Assembly: GCF_000143415.4 (NCBI RefSeq)
Contig: NW_003314345.1
Coordinates: 142,574-206,573, forward strand
DNA: 64,000 nucleotides
DNA from: Selaginella moellendorffii
Taxonomy: Eukaryota > Plantae > Lycopodiophyta
Direction: 5' to 3'
A program made the translations under genes and the position numbers. Positions within the stretch are counted from its first letter, which is position 1; every line of letters starts with the position of its first letter. This document shows positions 2,982 to 12,800 of this stretch, piece by piece. The notes under the pieces are model-generated. The model was not told the origin of the DNA. It made no database searches and saw only the letters and a list, made by a program, of their open reading frames with translations.

Positions 2982-4177
<1,196 letters not shown>

Positions 4178-4663: not shown

Positions 4664-6658
4664 TTAGGTGGTGTACGACCACATGTTGGCTATCAGTGAG
4701 TAGAAAGCACTGCTAGGCACTGACGGATAGCTTGAGTTCTTCTTGCCATCGTCATGGTCGAAAACTTTGCCATTGTCTCGCGAGAGATTGCTTCTCGCGT
4801 AGCCTCCCAGCAAGCACGTCCACTCTAGGTCGCTGGGCACAAACGGCATGTTTTGCATGGCATCCTGGGCATCTCGCGAGTGCGCAGATCGGGCAAGCAG
4901 ATCCACCACGCCAGTGTAGTGATCTTTAGAAGGCTCCAGCCCAAAGTCCACCACCATCGACATCAGAAACTTGCGAGCACTCGAAACCTTTCCGGCATGG
5001 CTGCAAGCGATGAGCAGCGATGTGAAGCACGAATCACTTGCGCGGCCTATCTTCACGTCGCCACCATTCGTGATCATCGTGTGAAATGTGAGCATCGTCG
5101 CTGATTCCAGTTTGTTGTAGGCATAGCCCGCGATCATGACGCTCCACGCAAGTCCATCTCTCTCCGGCATGGCATCAAACACCGCCTTGGCCTGATCGAT
5201 GTGCCCGTTCCATGCATACGCTGTCAGCATTGCCGTCCACAGCGCTGGGTTCCTCTCGGGCATTCCTTCCAGGGAATGTCTTGCCTCGTCAAGATGCCCA
5301 TCAAGCCCATACAGTGGTAGCATCACTGCCCAGCTCACAGCGTTTTGCTCGGGCATCTCTGCTAGCAGCTTCTTGGCCTCCTCCACACACCCGTTTCTAG
5401 CGTAAGTCTGGAGCATCGACGTCCAGGAGATCAAGTCCCGGAGAGGCATTGCCTCAAACAACCTCTTGGCTTCGCTCAAGCACCCACACTTTCCATACAC
5501 GAAAAGCATTGAGTTGAAGGACGGAAGGTCCAGCTGAGGCATCGAATCCAGCACACGCCTCGCCTGCTCCAAATCTCCAGCTTGAGCATATGCAGCGAGC
5601 AACGAGCTCCATGAGAGCACATTCACTTGCGGCATTCGATCAAAAGTGGCTTTGGTCTCGGCGACGTGATGCCGGCTGTAGGCGGCGAGCATGGCGTTCC
5701 ACGCGATTAGATCTCTCTCAGGCAAGCGATCGAAGAGGAGCTTGGCGTCCTCCAAGCGATCGCTCTGAGCATACGCATGCAAGAGTGTAGTCCACGAGAC
5801 TAGATCTAGTTGCGGCATGGAGTGTAGAATGATCCTAGCTTCGTCAACCCTCTCACACTGTACGTAGGCCATTAGGAGCGCATTCCAAGCAACTAGATTT
5901 GTTTGAGGCATTGTGTCGAACAAGGCTTTAGCGCTTTCCAAATGCCCGTGCTGGGCATAAGCGGCAAGCATTGCAGTGCAGGATATGAGGTCGTGCTCTG
6001 GCATTTCTTCGCTAAAGACTGCCCATGCATGCACGAGACCTTTGCTCTCAATAATGGTTCCCAGCATTGTCGTCCATGACACGATGTTCCACATCGGCAT
6101 TGCCTCAAACAAGTCCTTGGCTCTTACAACATGCCCTTCACGGGCATATGCAGACAAGAGCACGGACCAGGAAACAAGATCCTTTTGTGGGAGCAAGTCG
6201 AAAGCCCTCTTTGCTTCGTCTCGAGATCCATTCTGTGTGTAAGCAGCCAAGATTGTGTTCCATGAAACAAGACTATGCTGGGGCATAGAATCAAACACTT
6301 CTTCAGCCTCCACAAGATGGCCTGCTTCGGCAACTGCACGAAGAAGAATGTTCCATGAAACGACGCTGGGCTGTGGCATCGCGCGGAAGAATTCTCGGGC
6401 CTGGTCGAGCTGCCGGTTGCTGGTGTAGGCTAAGAGCATCATGTCCCAGGAGAAGGAATCATTTTTTACTTGGTTCTTGTCGAAGATCTGGCGTGCCAGG
6501 GCGGGGCTTCCACACCTGGCGTACATTTCAATCAGCTTGTTTGCGAGGAAGGAGTCGGAGCTTGCGGAGAGAAAGGAATGGGCTGCCAAGTGAATCTCTT
6601 TTGCATCATTGAGCGTTCTGCAAGATTGAATGGCTTCCACAAGCTGCCTCCTCTCCAT
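4664..6658 (-). CDS. PLS-class pentatricopeptide repeat protein ending in an E-type motif, no DYW domain
   Basis: Single-exon 664-aa ORF with many 31-aa repeats (DLVSWNAMLAAYAQ.G..EA..LFD.MP), ending EPSKDHYTGVVDLLARS...MPFVPSDLEWTCLLG. Confidence 0.92.
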   Translation of the reverse strand: MERRQLVEAIQSCRTLNDAKEIHLAAHSFLSASSDSFLANKLIEMYARCGSPALARQIFDKNQVKNDSFSWDMMLLAYTSNRQLDQAREFFRAMPQPSVVSWNILLRAVAEAGHLVEAEEVFDSMPQHSLVSWNTILAAYTQNGSRDEAKRAFDLLPQKDLVSWSVLLSAYAREGHVVRAKDLFEAMPMWNIVSWTTMLGTIIESKGLVHAWAVFSEEMPEHDLISCTAMLAAYAQHGHLESAKALFDTMPQTNLVAWNALLMAYVQCERVDEARIILHSMPQLDLVSWTTLLHAYAQSDRLEDAKLLFDRLPERDLIAWNAMLAAYSRHHVAETKATFDRMPQVNVLSWSSLLAAYAQAGDLEQARRVLDSMPQLDLPSFNSMLFVYGKCGCLSEAKRLFEAMPLRDLISWTSMLQTYARNGCVEEAKKLLAEMPEQNAVSWAVMLPLYGLDGHLDEARHSLEGMPERNPALWTAMLTAYAWNGHIDQAKAVFDAMPERDGLAWSVMIAGYAYNKLESATMLTFHTMITNGGDVKIGRASDSCFTSLLIACSHAGKVSSARKFLMSMVVDFGLEPSKDHYTGVVDLLARSAHSRDAQDAMQNMPFVPSDLEWTCLLGGYARSNLSRDNGKVFDHDDGKKNSSYPSVPSSAFYSLIANMWSYTT

Positions 6659-7131
6659 TCATCATTAAAAATTTCTCTCGAGTTTGAGACGTTGGAGCAA
6701 TAAAGTAAATCGACCCTATAGGGTTTTCCTGTTCAGATTTTCACTTGTAGCATCTCTTCTTATTTGTCTCTCTCCCCGGGACGTGATGGAGAACTTCCAG
6801 AGCTCCAAATGATCTATTGAAGATCATGAAAGCATTAGAGAGCCTTTGAAAGTTCTCCATTGCCTCTTGGGAGGGGAGACATGGACATGGACATGGCGGG
6901 TCTTCTTTGCATGCTTCATGAAATCCTTTCTCTCTCTGTTTGTTCACCCGTGTTCTTGCTCACAATAAATTCGGACAGCCCCTCTAGTTTTCTATCTGAG
7001 AATCAAAGAAAATGCATTCTACTTTTTTTCTTCTTTTAATCTAAAAGGATTCACTTCACAAAATCTTAGTACTTACTTGGAAGAATGAATGAATCAAAGG
7101 CTAAAAACGCTACAGCAACTAAGACCCTGCT

Positions 7132-8983
7132 TCAGTACTTGTGATTGACGAACCGGCACTCCTTCCTGATCTGGCCCTCCGATCCCAGCAGCGGCTTGAT
7201 GGCAGCCATCCTCACCATGGACGCTACAAACTCCTGGAAGAACTTTGCCTGGTCGTAGGCAAATGCCGTAACCAGTGCGCTGGTGGGAGCATACGGCGCA
7301 AACAGCACCTGGTCCGACGTAAGAACACCCTTGTGAAGCTCCAGATCGACGAAGAAGTGATTGTCAAACTTGGTGGGAGTGACGATGTCCAGAGGCGTCG
7401 TCTCCTGCGCGTTGCCTTTGGGAGGACAAATGTGCTCGAGGCTGCGGAGGAGCGCCGGGTCGATGCTCGGATCTGGCCGACGAGTTCCCGCAAAGTTGTA
7501 GAGGCGCTGCCGGAAGCTGGCGCAGCGTGACACGCCAATGGTGTGAGAGCCCGTCAGTGCCACCAAGTCCACGATGGACAGGCCCTTCTTGGCAAATGCG
7601 GCGATGAGCTGCGGAAGCGTCGAGTTGGGAGGCGGGATGTCTCTGTTGGCCAGGCTGCGGCTCGCAGTCAGGCTGTCTCGACGACCAAGATGAACTTCCC
7701 ACGACGGGCCTCCAGTCTGATTCATGCCACACAGAAAAGAAGTGAGATCAAAGATTAGTATCGAAGTACGTACCAGGACGACCGAGTCCCGTGCAGCAAT
7801 GGCGAGAACGTCGGCACAAGAAACAACACCCTCGCATTCCTTCTCCAGAGCTGCCTTGATCTCGTCAATGACTTCGAAGCCACGAGCCGAGTTCCTGTTG
7901 GGATTGGCGGTCTTTTCTCCTTTGAAAGTATGCGTATCGTCCAGAAGTATGGAAGCATCACATCCCTGCAAGAAATTCACATCTTATTCTCATAAAAAAC
8001 AAAGAAAAACAAAGAAAAAAGAATGCAACAACTTACCAGAACGAAACAATCGTGAAACTGAAGCCTGAGAATGTTTGCAGCAGTTCTGGAATCCTTTTCC
8101 ACGGCCTGCTGCAAGACTTCCTTCACGATAGACTCGGCAGCGGGGCACTTCTCCTTGTAGAAGCCAGGCCGCAACACAGCAATTCCCATCTCCGCAGAAG
8201 TAGCACCACCGGGAAATGGAAATGGTCGTCCTCCTGGGAATGGAAAACCCCGTCCTGCTGGGAATGGAAAGCCTCCCACGCCAGGCCTCGGTATCATGCC
8301 ACCGGGAAGTAAACCCGGGATGGCTGGAAACTTTGGAACTTGCTCCTTCGGAACTACTGGATACTCCGGAACCTTTGGCACTTCGGGGACCGGCTGCTTG
8401 GGAAGAATCTCGGGAACTACTGGATACTCCGGAACCTTTGGAACTTCGGGGACCGGCTGCTTGGGAGGAATCTCGGGAACTACTGGATATTCCGGAACCT
8501 TTGGAACTTCCGGGACCGGCTGCTTGGAAGGAATCTCCGGAACTACTGGATACTCCGGAACCTTTGGAACGGGAACTTCTGGAACTTTGGGACCTTCTGG
8601 CACTTTGGGTGGAATTTCTGGAACTGTGGGTATTTCTGGAGGAACCTCCGGTACCTTGGGAATGATTGGAACTGCTGGAACTTTGGGAACCTCCGGAACC
8701 TTTGGAACTTCTGGAATGACTGGAACCTCTGGAACCTTTGGAACTTCTGGAACGACTGGAACTTCCTTCGGCGGGACCTTTGGAACGATCGGGATCTCTG
8801 GAATCCTGGGGATCTCCGGATCTTAGGAATCGGAATGGTGATCTCTCGTATCTCTTGCGCGCCACTAGCTCCTGGAAAGAATCCATCACCAAGCTGTGGC
8901 GGGATAAATCCTTGGAACCCGCAAATCCCCCTCATCCACTGCCCAAGGAAAAGAACGCGTAGCGGGACGAGAAGAGGATCCAT
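7132..8983 (-). CDS. Class III peroxidase with a long N-terminal proline-rich (PEVPK/PEYP) repeat domain; one apparent 1-nt frameshift near 8820 (exons about 8983-8037, 7965-7774, 7716-7132)
   Basis: Complete peroxidase motifs ([40 protein letters not shown]) are in frame with the repeat ORF. A hydrophobic N-terminus starts at ATG 8983 with a TATA box about 40 bp upstream. Confidence 0.85.
8345..8570 (-). repeat. 63-bp coding tandem repeat (PEVPKVPEYPVVPEIPPKQPV, about 3.5 copies)
   Basis: ggaactactggata recurs near 8351, 8413, 8476 and 8539. Confidence 0.9.
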
Positions 8984-9019: not shown

Positions 9020-9027
9020 TTATATAG
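9020..9027 (-). promoter_or_regulatory. TATA box of the Pro-rich peroxidase
   Basis: ctatataa on the minus strand, about 40 bp upstream of ATG 8983. Confidence 0.6.
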
Positions 9028-9136: not shown

Positions 9137-9610
9137 ATGATGTTCGTGGTTGCGCCATTGCTCTTCTTCCTGGCATCGCTGCCTCGATTGTCCGCCGCTG
9201 ACGCCATTCTCCCCAGCGCCGAGGTGTCGCGATTCTTGGAAGAGCATGGCCTTCCCGGCGGTCTTCTCCCCAATCTGGTCACCAGCTACTCGCTGCGCGA
9301 CAACAATTCCACATTCGTCGTCCATCTCCAGCACGAATGCTACCACCGCTTCGAGAATCTGGTGTGGTATGGCACTACCATCTCTGGGAAGCTGGGCTAT
9401 GGCAAGATCGAGAATCTATCGGGAATCCAGGCCAAGGAGCTCTTCCTGTGGCTGGGAGTGACGGGAATTCGCGTGGATGAATCCAACCGAGACTACATCT
9501 ACTTTGAGGTGGGGATTGTGTCCAAGAGGCTGCGCGCATCGCTCTTTCGAGATCCACCATCGTGCTCAAAGTCTAGTGGCTCTCTTGTGGATCTACACGA
9601 GGCAATCTAG
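9137..9610 (+). CDS. DUF538 family secreted protein
   Basis: Signal peptide, LEEHGLPGGLLP, and ISGKLGYGKIENLSGIQAKELFLW...IYFEVG. Confidence 0.92.
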   Translation: MMFVVAPLLFFLASLPRLSAADAILPSAEVSRFLEEHGLPGGLLPNLVTSYSLRDNNSTFVVHLQHECYHRFENLVWYGTTISGKLGYGKIENLSGIQAKELFLWLGVTGIRVDESNRDYIYFEVGIVSKRLRASLFRDPPSCSKSSGSLVDLHEAI

Positions 9611-9742
9611 AGTTTTAGTTCCTCGTCTTCTTCCTGGTGTACGTATAAGTGCTCTTTCAAGAGCCTCCATCGTGCTCAAAGTCTAGTGGTTCTCTTGTGG
9701 ATCTAGATAAGTTTAATCTAGAGTTTTGGTTCCTCGTGTTCT
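9556..9742 (+). repeat. Local duplication of the DUF538 3' end
   Basis: ccatcgtgctcaaagtctagtgg.tctcttgtggatcta...aatctagagtttt occurs twice (about 9557 and 9668). Confidence 0.75.
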
Positions 9743-9836
9743 TCGTGTTCTATGTATCTTTTTGTTATTAAGATAATTCGAAGTGTCACACTCTTGGTGT
9801 TCTTGGTGTCACTTTGATCCATCGAGAAGAAACGAA

Positions 9837-12800
9837 CTAGAAGATCGAGGATTGCTCCAGCCTCCGTCTCTCCTTTTGCCTCGCGCGTCGAGCTTTTCTC
9901 CTGAGCGTTGCCACCGACGGCGGCCTCACCTCCTCGTCCAGTTCCACGTAGTGTTTCTCTGGCATAAGACTACCATCCCACTCTATCACCGCTTGAGCTC
10001 CTCCATTTCTATCCCAGTGTTCTTGCTCACTGAAAGTAGGCTTCTTCTTCTTCCGCTCCATTCTCTCCTCTTGCTTTTCCTTCTCCAGTCCTTGCTTCTC
10101 GTGATATGGCCGCTCCTCCTCATGAACTTGCTGCTGCCCATCCTGGATCTGTTCTAGTGCTTGACGCTTCTTCTTCTTCTTCTTCTTCGGGTTCTCGGAG
10201 AGCTCAGAATTTTTGTCCTCCGCAAAAACCAGCTGGTTCTTCTCTTTCCTCTCGGCCACCAAAGTTTCCTTTTCCACTCCATCCGGTTCAAGCCCCTTCC
10301 GTTTCTTCTTCCGTTTCTTAACGTGCTCTACATTCTCTTCTTCTGCTTGAGGCTGCTCTTGCCCCTGCTCCACCTGAGCTTCTCCATCTTGTTCTAGCTC
10401 CTTACGCTTCTTCTTCCGTTTCTTAACGTGCTCTACATTCTCTTCTTCTGCTTGAGGCTGCTCTTGCCCCTGCTCCACCTGAGCTTCTCCATCTTGTTCT
10501 AGCTCCTTACGCTTCTTCTTCCGTTTCTTGACGGGCTCAGCTTGAAGCTGGTTTTCCCTTTCGTCCTCAATATGCTGCTGCTCTTCCTGTTCGACTTCCT
10601 TCCGCGTCTCCTTCCGGTTCTTGACGACCTCGAGACTCGGTTGAAACGGATTTATCTCTTTTTCCGACAAAGTTCCCTTCTCCGAGCACTGTTCTTGCTG
10701 CTGCTGGTCCGTCTGAGTTCGTCCATCGTACTCCAAACTCTTTTGCTCTGCTTGAAGCTGGTTCGTTTCCTTTTCCCCCTGGATTTGTTTCTTCTTGCCT
10801 GCAAGCTTTACTTTCACTGGCCACTCCCGCTCTTCTTGCTGCTCGTGCTGCGCCTGAGCCCCTCCATCCTGGACTAGCTCTTGTTCTGTCTCCTGGCTTT
10901 CGGACTTCTTGCGTAAATAGTTCTCGGCCTGAAGCTTCTCAGCCGCGAGAGTTTGGTTATCTTGGGCCTGCTCCTGTTTTAGCTCGACGAGATTGAGGGG
11001 TGCTTTCTCGTTGTTTGTCCCGCAGACAGCTCCGGTAGATCCTGCCTCCAATTGCTGCTGTTCATCTGACACTTTCTGGATATGTGCTTGCTCGCAGTGC
11101 TCTCTACTTCTCTGCTGCTTATCGCCCATGGATTCATTGTTTGCCTGGTTATCGCCCGCCACCTTTTCTTTCTTTATCTGGCAGACAGCCTCCATAGGTG
11201 CCTTCTCGCATAGCTCGTTTTGTCTCTGCGGCACCGCCGTGGACTCCTTGTTTGTCTGACACGAAGCCCCAGTGAGTACTTTCTCGCAGTTCTCGTTTCC
11301 TCGCTGCTGGTTCATTTCTGTGGCTTCGAGCTCGCCTCTTCTCTTCTGCAGCTTATTCTCCGCCACCTTTCCTGTGGACTCCTTACACGGAGCTTCTGAG
11401 GCTGTTCTCCCGCAGTGCTCTCTTTTAGGCTGCCGCATCACCGTCGACTCATTGTTTGTCTCGCAGCGCTGGCTACCCATTTCTCTTAATTCCTTGTCCT
11501 TCTGACAAGCAGCACTGGCTGCCGGAAAAGATGGACCATTTTCGAGCCCTTCACCACTACCATCCGGCTCCATCTTCACGCGAGTTGCAGCAGCTTGAGT
11601 AGCAACCCGTTTCTCGCTGGCTGCGTTTGCAGCATTCTCAATCTTCACTTCGGCTCGACTAACTTTCGCTCGATTTTCTTGCTTTTGGAGCTCCTTCACG
11701 CCATCCACCGAACGGACACCCGGTTGTCGATCGCCATGGTGACGCTCTTTCTCCGCGTCATGTCCGTCTCTCCGATCACCACCACGGTGACATTCTTTCT
11801 CCCCGTCATGTCGACTCCTCCTCGCTTCTTGATCATATATCTGGCTTGGACGAGCCTCCTCATGTCGGTGCTTCTCGTAGTTCCTGTTGTACTTAGAATC
11901 CTCCTGTCGGTGCCTCGCTACTTCGCTACTAGGACCTGCGAGCAAGTTTTACACATTTACATCAGGATACTATTTACACTTCGCTTACCCTCAGAGGTCA
12001 CGTTTGATGGCCTTTCCAGCAAGTAAGGAAACAGGCCAGCTTGCTCTAAGCGATGGAACAGACTTCTTCTATATGCACTACCTGGATATGAATCAGCATG
12101 AAGAGACAATTTGTGCCAAGAAACGATAGCTTCTACGTACATTTTCGGATTGAATCAGACAACAAAATGCAGCGGTCCCGAGCTTTTGCCAACGCGATCA
12201 GTATCTCCGCCTCTGCAATCTACAAGTACCAGGCATTATTTAGAAAACATGCTGTGAAGCATCCTACCCCGGCTGCATCATCTGCAAACATAAAAGTTGG
12301 GTTACATCGAAAACAAAAACCAAAGGACGAAAGCATGAGAGCAAAGCATACCGATGAGCACCAGATCGAATTTGCAGTTCCATTTCTCCAGATGGAAACT
12401 ATCACTGCAGGAGAGGGTGGTGCAAACAACGGATGCGTTGCTCAGCACGTTTTCCTCGGCAATATAATACGAACTGTAGGCCCGCTGTTCACTGATAATG
12501 ATGCCCTCGAGGGTCAAGCCATGGCAATGCCTGTCGATCTTTTCCATCGGACCAACACGAACGATTGTTCCCCGGCGAGGAACGTAGGCCTGGCCATCAC
12601 TGTCCAAGAGTCTGCTTGAGAGACTCAACGCTATCTGGTCCACAGCATTGTTGTATGGTGCGCACACAAGTATCTTCGCACTAGAAACACAGAGAGACCC
12701 TTGCATATAAGATCACACAAAAGAAAAACTTACTATCGGGTCGCACACAATGCCGCAGACACAATTCCTGGAAAAACGTAAGTAAGCAACAGATCAATGC

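Follow-up and report, generated by a model that had tools for sequence, protein, structure and literature searches.

The window analysed here, a stretch of 64,000 nucleotides (nt) from the lycophyte Selaginella moellendorffii, carries on its minus strand a gene in which a class III peroxidase is preceded by a long proline-rich repeat region. We consider it likely that this is a class III peroxidase extended by a proline-rich protein (PRP) module, that it is intact in a second copy, here named copy B, on the sister scaffold GL377928.1, and that the copy in the window is a frame-broken hybrid between copy B and a neighbouring duplicate, copy A. The window matches scaffold GL377649.1 exactly, L003 being recovered whole within it from position 137. 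How individual class III peroxidases are held at their sites in the cell wall is poorly understood, and a naturally occurring enzyme that brings along its own proline-rich wall module would give direct access to this question.

The sister scaffold (8676 nt, referred to as L001) was found through a second Selaginella match, P0002 (SELMODRAFT_449384, 214 amino acids (aa)), which has the same MDPLLVPL... leader and is located on it. Its genes are arranged in the order DUF538 gene, copy A, a 3.4-kb insert, copy B and PPR gene. Copy B starts at about L001 4900, has its ATG at 5130 and runs on into exons 2 and 3 and then into the PPR gene. From this ATG a single clean open reading frame (ORF) leads in frame through a G/F/P module, the repeats and a linker to FHDCFVL. 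The leader, MAMDRLLVPLHILFLVLAWA, has a maximal 12-residue hydropathy of 2.81. When joined with the exons at 6209-6400 and 6458-7042, copy B gives 1785 nt, or 594 aa, with a single terminal stop, as verified by a script. The intact form would thus be one secreted protein encoded by three exons and composed of a strong signal peptide, a 262-aa extension and the peroxidase. A 594-aa product recorded for L001 831-7042 was not used; three chance GT-AG pairs from the ATG of copy A also give 594 aa.

Copy A (L001 831 to about 1609) is a duplicate of the promoter, of exon 1 and of the first 40 nt or so of intron 1, and reads as a dead, decayed exon-1 pseudogene. Compared to copy B it contains 19 deletions; directly following RPGFY an AAG has become TAG, and the GT of the splice donor now reads TT. 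Its indels compensate one another so that a 214-aa ORF survives, and copy A is annotated as a separate protein, SELMODRAFT_449384. Between the two copies lies, on the minus strand, a 638-aa ORF (L001 2208-4124; the recorded gene model has 618 aa) without counterpart on the window scaffold. Its product starts with a signal-like sequence, contains hydrophobic segments towards the C-terminus and matches no Pfam family. No inverted repeats or transposable element ends bordering the insert were found on L001. The 638-aa gene is either a presence/absence variant or reflects an assembly gap.

In the window, where all features of the gene lie on the minus strand, the repeats, the linker and the beginning of the peroxidase share one frame of 262 codons (8822-8037) with neither a stop nor an intron between them, just as the original prediction had described. 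The proline-rich repeat domain (8325-8822) is made up of x-V/I-P triplets, with six PEVPK motifs and four PKVPEYPVVPE units; the repeats are indeed of the PE[VI]PK / PEYPVVPEIP type and measure about 165 aa. They are followed by a G/F/P-rich linker (8190-8324; FPAIPGLLPGG...GGFPFPAGRGFPFPGGRPFPFPGG...), in which the announced GFPFP repeats are present as three GFPFP-like units and which includes the RefSeq start Met at 8297. The peroxidase part of exon 1 (8037-8189; MGIAVLRPGFYKEKCP...RLQFHDCFVL), at the 5' end of which the JGI model begins (8189), is separated by intron 1 (7966-8036; 71 nt, gtaagt...cag, GC 0.27), placed behind FHDCFV where class III genes have a conserved intron, from exon 2 (7774-7965; GCDAS...DSVVL, 64 codons). 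Intron 2 (7717-7773; 57 nt, gtacgt...cag) and exon 3 (7132-7716; TGGPSW...NHKY and the stop) complete the gene. These exon boundaries agree with the P0001 and RefSeq XP_002987834.2 (P0216) models, and the peroxidase part is 100% identical to P0001, the JGI protein SELMODRAFT_235371 (309 aa).

The peroxidase is complete, as predicted, since PF00141 matches in all three exons (E 3e-22 for exon 2 and 9e-42 for exon 3). The matches are in register, exon 1 covering profile positions 1-29, exon 2 positions 30-90 and exon 3 positions 92-235. The distal motif RLQFHDCF, the proximal motif GSHTIG with its His in exon 3, and eight Cys were read in P0001, so that the whole-domain match is accompanied by the motifs and cysteines of a class III peroxidase. 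After the linker the chain resumes with a mature-type start, LRPGFYKEKCP...FHDCFVL. Among solved structures, exon 3 matched 4cuo, 1pa2 and 1atj at E values of 1e-50 to 3e-57; the closest are banyan peroxidase, ATP A2 and horseradish peroxidase C (HRP C), and the nearest chains are all class III. As judged from its sequence, the locus encodes a class III (secretory, haem) peroxidase of S. moellendorffii. It shares with HRP C, ATP A2 and the banyan enzyme the full catalytic domain, and its introns after FHDCFV and DSVVL are those of the class; it differs by the lack of the third canonical intron and, in copy B, by its 594 aa with the 262-aa proline-rich extension, compared to about 320-340 aa for a typical member.

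The window copy differs from copy B at its 5' end. A TATATAA box (9020-9026), also present in copies A and B (L001 772-834 and 5071-5133), lies about 37 nt 5' of a copy-A-type ATG (8981-8983; MDPLLVPLRVLFLGQWMRG...), from which a signal-like N-terminus had been thought to lead into the repeats. This ATG is in another frame than the repeats, and translation from it results in FQRFQ-type nonsense and a stop at 8543 after 146 codons. The repeat frame itself is closed on its 5' side by a TAA (8823-8825), where copy B has CAA (Gln), and its first ATG appears only at 8297 (MIPRPG). The distance from 8983 to 7132, less both introns, is 1852 - 71 - 57 = 1724 nt; as this is not a multiple of three, the single protein of about 574 aa that had been proposed cannot be read from the window DNA. 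Such an uninterrupted protein starting at 8983 would draw on the good context of the ATG, the TATA box and the common frame of repeats and peroxidase, but the different frame of the ATG, the intervening TAA, the length of 1724 nt and a 5' end 61 nt shorter than that of the intact copy refute it, and we give it practically no credence.

Splicing might in principle restore the frame. We enumerated all GT-AG pairs connecting any upstream ATG with the repeat frame, and this full enumeration contained no strong splice pair. The least bad candidate is a hypothetical 68-nt intron (8822-8889; TTG/gtgatg...ttcctaag/ATC), the only simple junction of ATG 8983 with the repeat frame, which would produce 551 aa with a weak copy-A leader. 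In its favour, this GT-AG pair has the correct phase, and in length it resembles the other introns of the gene (57-71 nt). Both splice sites are weak, however (donor gtgatg, acceptor aag), copy B uses this stretch as coding sequence, the leader is poorly hydrophobic with an Arg in its core (maximal 12-residue hydropathy 1.84), and the RefSeq model on the window scaffold begins at MIPRPG. A rescue of the window copy by this intron therefore appears improbable. The downstream Met at 8189 (MGIAV) lacks a signal peptide, as had been noted, no hydrophobic leader being computed for it. With the ATG out of frame and the internal Mets devoid of a leader, the window copy cannot yield a secreted fusion by plain translation, the most likely outcome being no secreted product. 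The fusion architecture is real in copy B, where a signal peptide stands in one frame with the enzyme, and is not found in the window copy, the start of which is out of frame.

The frame shift can be traced to the origin of the 5' end. Window 9813-8777 equals L001 1-1037 base for base, on the copy A side, and window 8792-5498 is 100% identical to L001 5382-8676, on the copy B side, the change from one to the other occurring within a switch interval at 8777-8792. Because of this exact identity to A and to B on either side, the window gene is best described as an A/B hybrid, with its promoter and the first 190 or so coding nt from A (8793-8983, 100% identical to copy A) and everything from 8792 downstream from B. 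The out-of-frame start is due to this 5' end, which stems from the dead duplicate. Relative to copy B, this end has lost 6, 10, 13, 1, 12 and 19 nt (61 nt in total) and the 5' segment has about 25 substitutions, of which the T at 8825, a C in copy B, creates the TAA. In copy A a further 5-nt deletion slightly downstream resets the frame (66 nt in total). The switch lies after the 19-nt deletion and before the 5-nt one, and the hybrid has therefore lost the frame that each of its parents keeps. The window also lacks L001 1038-5381 (about 4.35 kb), including the 638-aa gene.

Such a hybrid is either a recent recombinant deletion allele, null or crippled, or the product of an A/B repeat collapsed during assembly. 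Under the latter explanation, the A-insert-B order seen on GL377928.1 would be the sole arrangement in the plant, which would have no frame-broken gene at all. We regard this as a serious possibility, though a less than even one: over 1037 and 3295 nt the two flanks agree 100% with L001 and show none of the single-nucleotide polymorphisms that distinguish haplotypes, and copies A and B are nearly identical for about 100 nt around the junction. On the other hand, the occurrence of the same flanks in two separate scaffolds fits two read sets, as expected of a heterozygous 4.35-kb indel, and the exact-identity switch interval is only 16 nt long; neither observation is decisive. In practice, the window gene model is unreliable, with a pseudogene-derived 5' end, a broken frame and a 4.35-kb difference from the sister scaffold, and users of the main scaffold would end up either mis-annotating the protein, as happened at JGI and RefSeq, or cloning a dead allele.

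We then considered whether the repeats are coding. The program TRF (Tandem Repeats Finder) reported a 63-nt unit present 3.5 times with 95% identity at 8350-8570, and periods of 9/18/27/36 nt at 8571-8766. All three frames are open across the repeats (ORFs of 300 aa and 146 aa also being found), so that an open frame by itself is no coding evidence. In the peroxidase frame, the three complete 63-nt units differ by a proportion of synonymous changes (pS) of 0.167 versus 0.028 for non-synonymous changes (pN), whereas pN exceeds pS in the other two frames. Over the whole repeat region the identity between units at lag 9 is 0.58/0.58/0.36 at codon positions 1/2/3 (Fisher p 2e-6, the positions not being independent), and the GC content of 0.52-0.60 is exon-like, compared to 0.27 and 0.39 for the introns. 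A signal peptide that precedes the repeats in their own frame is available in copy B alone. The synonymous bias, the lag-9 pattern, the exon-like GC and this signal peptide together make a translated extension the best reading of the repeats.

The public models imply instead that the repeats are 5' untranslated or otherwise non-coding, and that translation starts at MIPRPG (345 aa) or MGIAV (309 aa). JGI and RefSeq both annotate the gene in this manner, and the openness of all three frames agrees with it, but neither Met is followed by a signal peptide, which a class III peroxidase needs for disulfide formation, haem and Ca loading and secretion. Furthermore, the synonymous-biased variation and the exon-like GC mark the repeat frame as coding, and copy B has its signal peptide in that frame. 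We consider these models to be very improbable; the 309-aa JGI and 345-aa RefSeq proteins, which start at leaderless internal Mets, are most likely truncations, by which the public annotations conceal the fusion.

The extension, defined as residues 24-285 of copy B, consists of P (30.5%), V (15.6%), E (10.7%), G (8.4%), I (8.4%) and K (6.9%), among others, and contains no Cys. PEVPK occurs six times, KVPE nine times and PEIP six times. Its Tyr residues, at 165, 186, 207 and 228, are spaced by 21 residues and all stand in a PEYPVV context. In a single-sequence AlphaFold2 model of copy B, of low confidence, a helix at residues 4-22 is followed by a segment without secondary structure (23-295) and then by the peroxidase helices, the extension thus being predicted to be unstructured. 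By composition it corresponds to a lightly charged module of the PRP type, and not to an extensin.

The extension also contains tandem PE[LIV]PK pentapeptides, and in this it resembles PELPK1 and PELPK2 (At5g09530/At5g09520 class). The PELPK proteins have been described as a class of angiosperms in which the N- and C-terminal regions outside the repeats are conserved (PMC3149072). They are stand-alone proteins, whereas the repeats described here are attached to a peroxidase. The extension matched a PELPK1-like protein of Prosopis weakly (E 2.6e-4, in low-complexity sequence), and the best repeat matches were bacterial surface proteins, which scored at least as well. As the class is reported for angiosperms and the best matches are bacterial, we would not file the extension as a PELPK homologue; the label PELPK-like, given in the original prediction, is apt only as a description of the motif, the similarity being of low complexity.

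Relatives were sought by word searches with exon 1 of the window (ranges 144-458, 195-621 aa), the 355-aa ORF of copy B and the 146-aa 5' ORF of the hybrid, in which only P0001 and P0002 were related and the remaining matches were of low complexity. A full HMMER search with exon 1 of copy B among 1.84 billion representative proteins yielded no further case of repeats of this kind joined to the beginning of a peroxidase. The negative result carries little weight, since members may be concealed by the clustering at 50% and the coverage of lycophytes may be thin. P0061, P0085, P0067 and P0185, in which the peroxidase starts late, are mis-models of tandem peroxidases and not fusions. No PRP-peroxidase fusion is described in the literature searched. 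Within the window, a second class III peroxidase gene (2982-4090, minus strand; 328 aa, 52% identity in exon 3) encodes a normal signal peptide immediately before QLTPDFY. Since this paralog has a plain leader directly before its mature start, the extension is derived and, as far as the libraries searched show, lineage-specific.

The first exons of four class III peroxidases from other sources (P0134, P0102, P0177 and P0150) encode low-complexity inserts of 30-75 aa between the signal peptide and the mature N-terminus. These inserts are located at the place of the extension, before the xFY..CP mature start, but are rich in P/S/A/Y or in G/F, and none has PE[VI]PK repeats. The site between signal peptide and mature N-terminus hence seems to be expansion-prone in the class III family. 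We propose that in the Selaginella gene this interval was expanded by tandem repetition into a 262-residue P/V/E/K-rich domain, in which the G/F/P module is followed by PE[VI]PK-type repeats containing four Tyr at regular distances and then by the GFPFP linker. In the intact protein the extension may serve as an extended wall-binding tether or spacer, by which the peroxidase would be retained at one site of the wall. It would act through ionic interactions of its E and K residues and possibly through coupling of Tyr or Lys by the enzyme's own activity.

The shorter inserts at the same place in P0134, P0102, P0150 and P0177 and the preserved mature-type N-terminus LRPGFY are also in line with a different fate, in which the extension, as an N-terminal propeptide, is cleaved off once the protein has been secreted, leaving an ordinary enzyme of about 300 aa with no anchoring role. 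We regard this as unlikely, though still to be reckoned with, since the purifying selection on the repeat units suggests that the sequence itself matters, and no recognisable processing site was found in the extension.

Several observations weigh against an intact, functional PRP-extended peroxidase accompanied by a hybrid allele. The extensin motifs SP3-5, YXY, VYK and PPVYK were not found in the extension (SPPP 0, PPVYK 0, PVYK 0), the definitions of Tyr cross-link motifs being those reviewed in PMC9842689. A role as tether or in self-cross-linking, the latter put forward in the original prediction, is inferred only, the known Tyr cross-link motifs being absent, and self-coupling through Tyr or Lys is possible but unsupported. 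As no fusion was found in other species, conservation cannot back a function, and the extension may be young. Look-ups of P0001 and of the 355-aa and 146-aa ORFs returned no record of transcript or peptide support; exact look-ups of P0001, the 355-aa unspliced copy B ORF, the 146-aa hybrid ORF, and the DUF538 and PPR proteins found nothing beyond two NCBI scaffolds. Finally, the two scaffolds are compatible both with a real hybrid allele and with an artefact of assembly, and do not discriminate between them.

A bolder version of the proposal is that the intact allele encodes a self-anchoring peroxidase, which couples its four Tyr, or Lys, to wall polymers or neighbouring tails in an H2O2-dependent manner, and that the plant is heterozygous for a frame-broken recombinant lacking the neighbouring 638-aa membrane-protein gene. 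We consider this combination doubtful. If true, self-coupling would fix oxidative activity at defined wall sites, and the recombinant allele would constitute a ready-made loss-of-function contrast.

The PRP-extended peroxidase can be compared with known chimeric wall proteins and with an animal enzyme. Proline-rich or extensin-like chimeras of the plant wall include HyPRP (a PRP combined with an 8CM domain), LRX, PERK and class I formins. Animal peroxidasin is a haem peroxidase equipped with matrix-interaction modules (LRR, Ig, vWF-C) that acts on the surrounding extracellular matrix; it offers an analogy only, since it belongs to another peroxidase superfamily, has other modules and is not homologous to the fusion gene. 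Like the plant chimeras, the fusion gene combines secreted Pro-rich repeats and a globular domain in one polypeptide, an arrangement that presumably positions the domain in the wall, but it differs in that the repeats stand N-terminal to the globular domain and in that this domain is a haem peroxidase. Signal peptide, repeats and domain are found in one ORF in copy B and not in the window copy. Fusions of PRP and Cys-rich domains have been treated as chimeric wall proteins (PMC3149072).

Among the neighbouring genes, an intronless gene for a 664-aa PPR protein (window 4664-6658) separates the fusion gene from the paralog at 2982-4090. On the other side, a DUF538 gene (window 9137-9610, plus strand) is divergent, its ATG lying about 155 nt from ATG 8983, and the promoter region common to both genes is therefore very short. 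The duplicated A/B block includes about the first 15 nt of the DUF538 coding sequence. At and just 3' of the end of this gene, two pairs of direct repeats of about 45-55 nt, with a spacing of about 110 nt and 86-93% identity, are located at window 9541-9757 (L001 57-273). Further along, the minus strand contains a 702-aa ORF rich in Lys, Glu and Gln (window 9837-11945) with near-identical VKKRKKKRKELEQDGEAQVEQGQEQPQAEEENVEH repeats, which is part of a recorded gene for a 1109-aa AAA_11 (helicase-type) protein.

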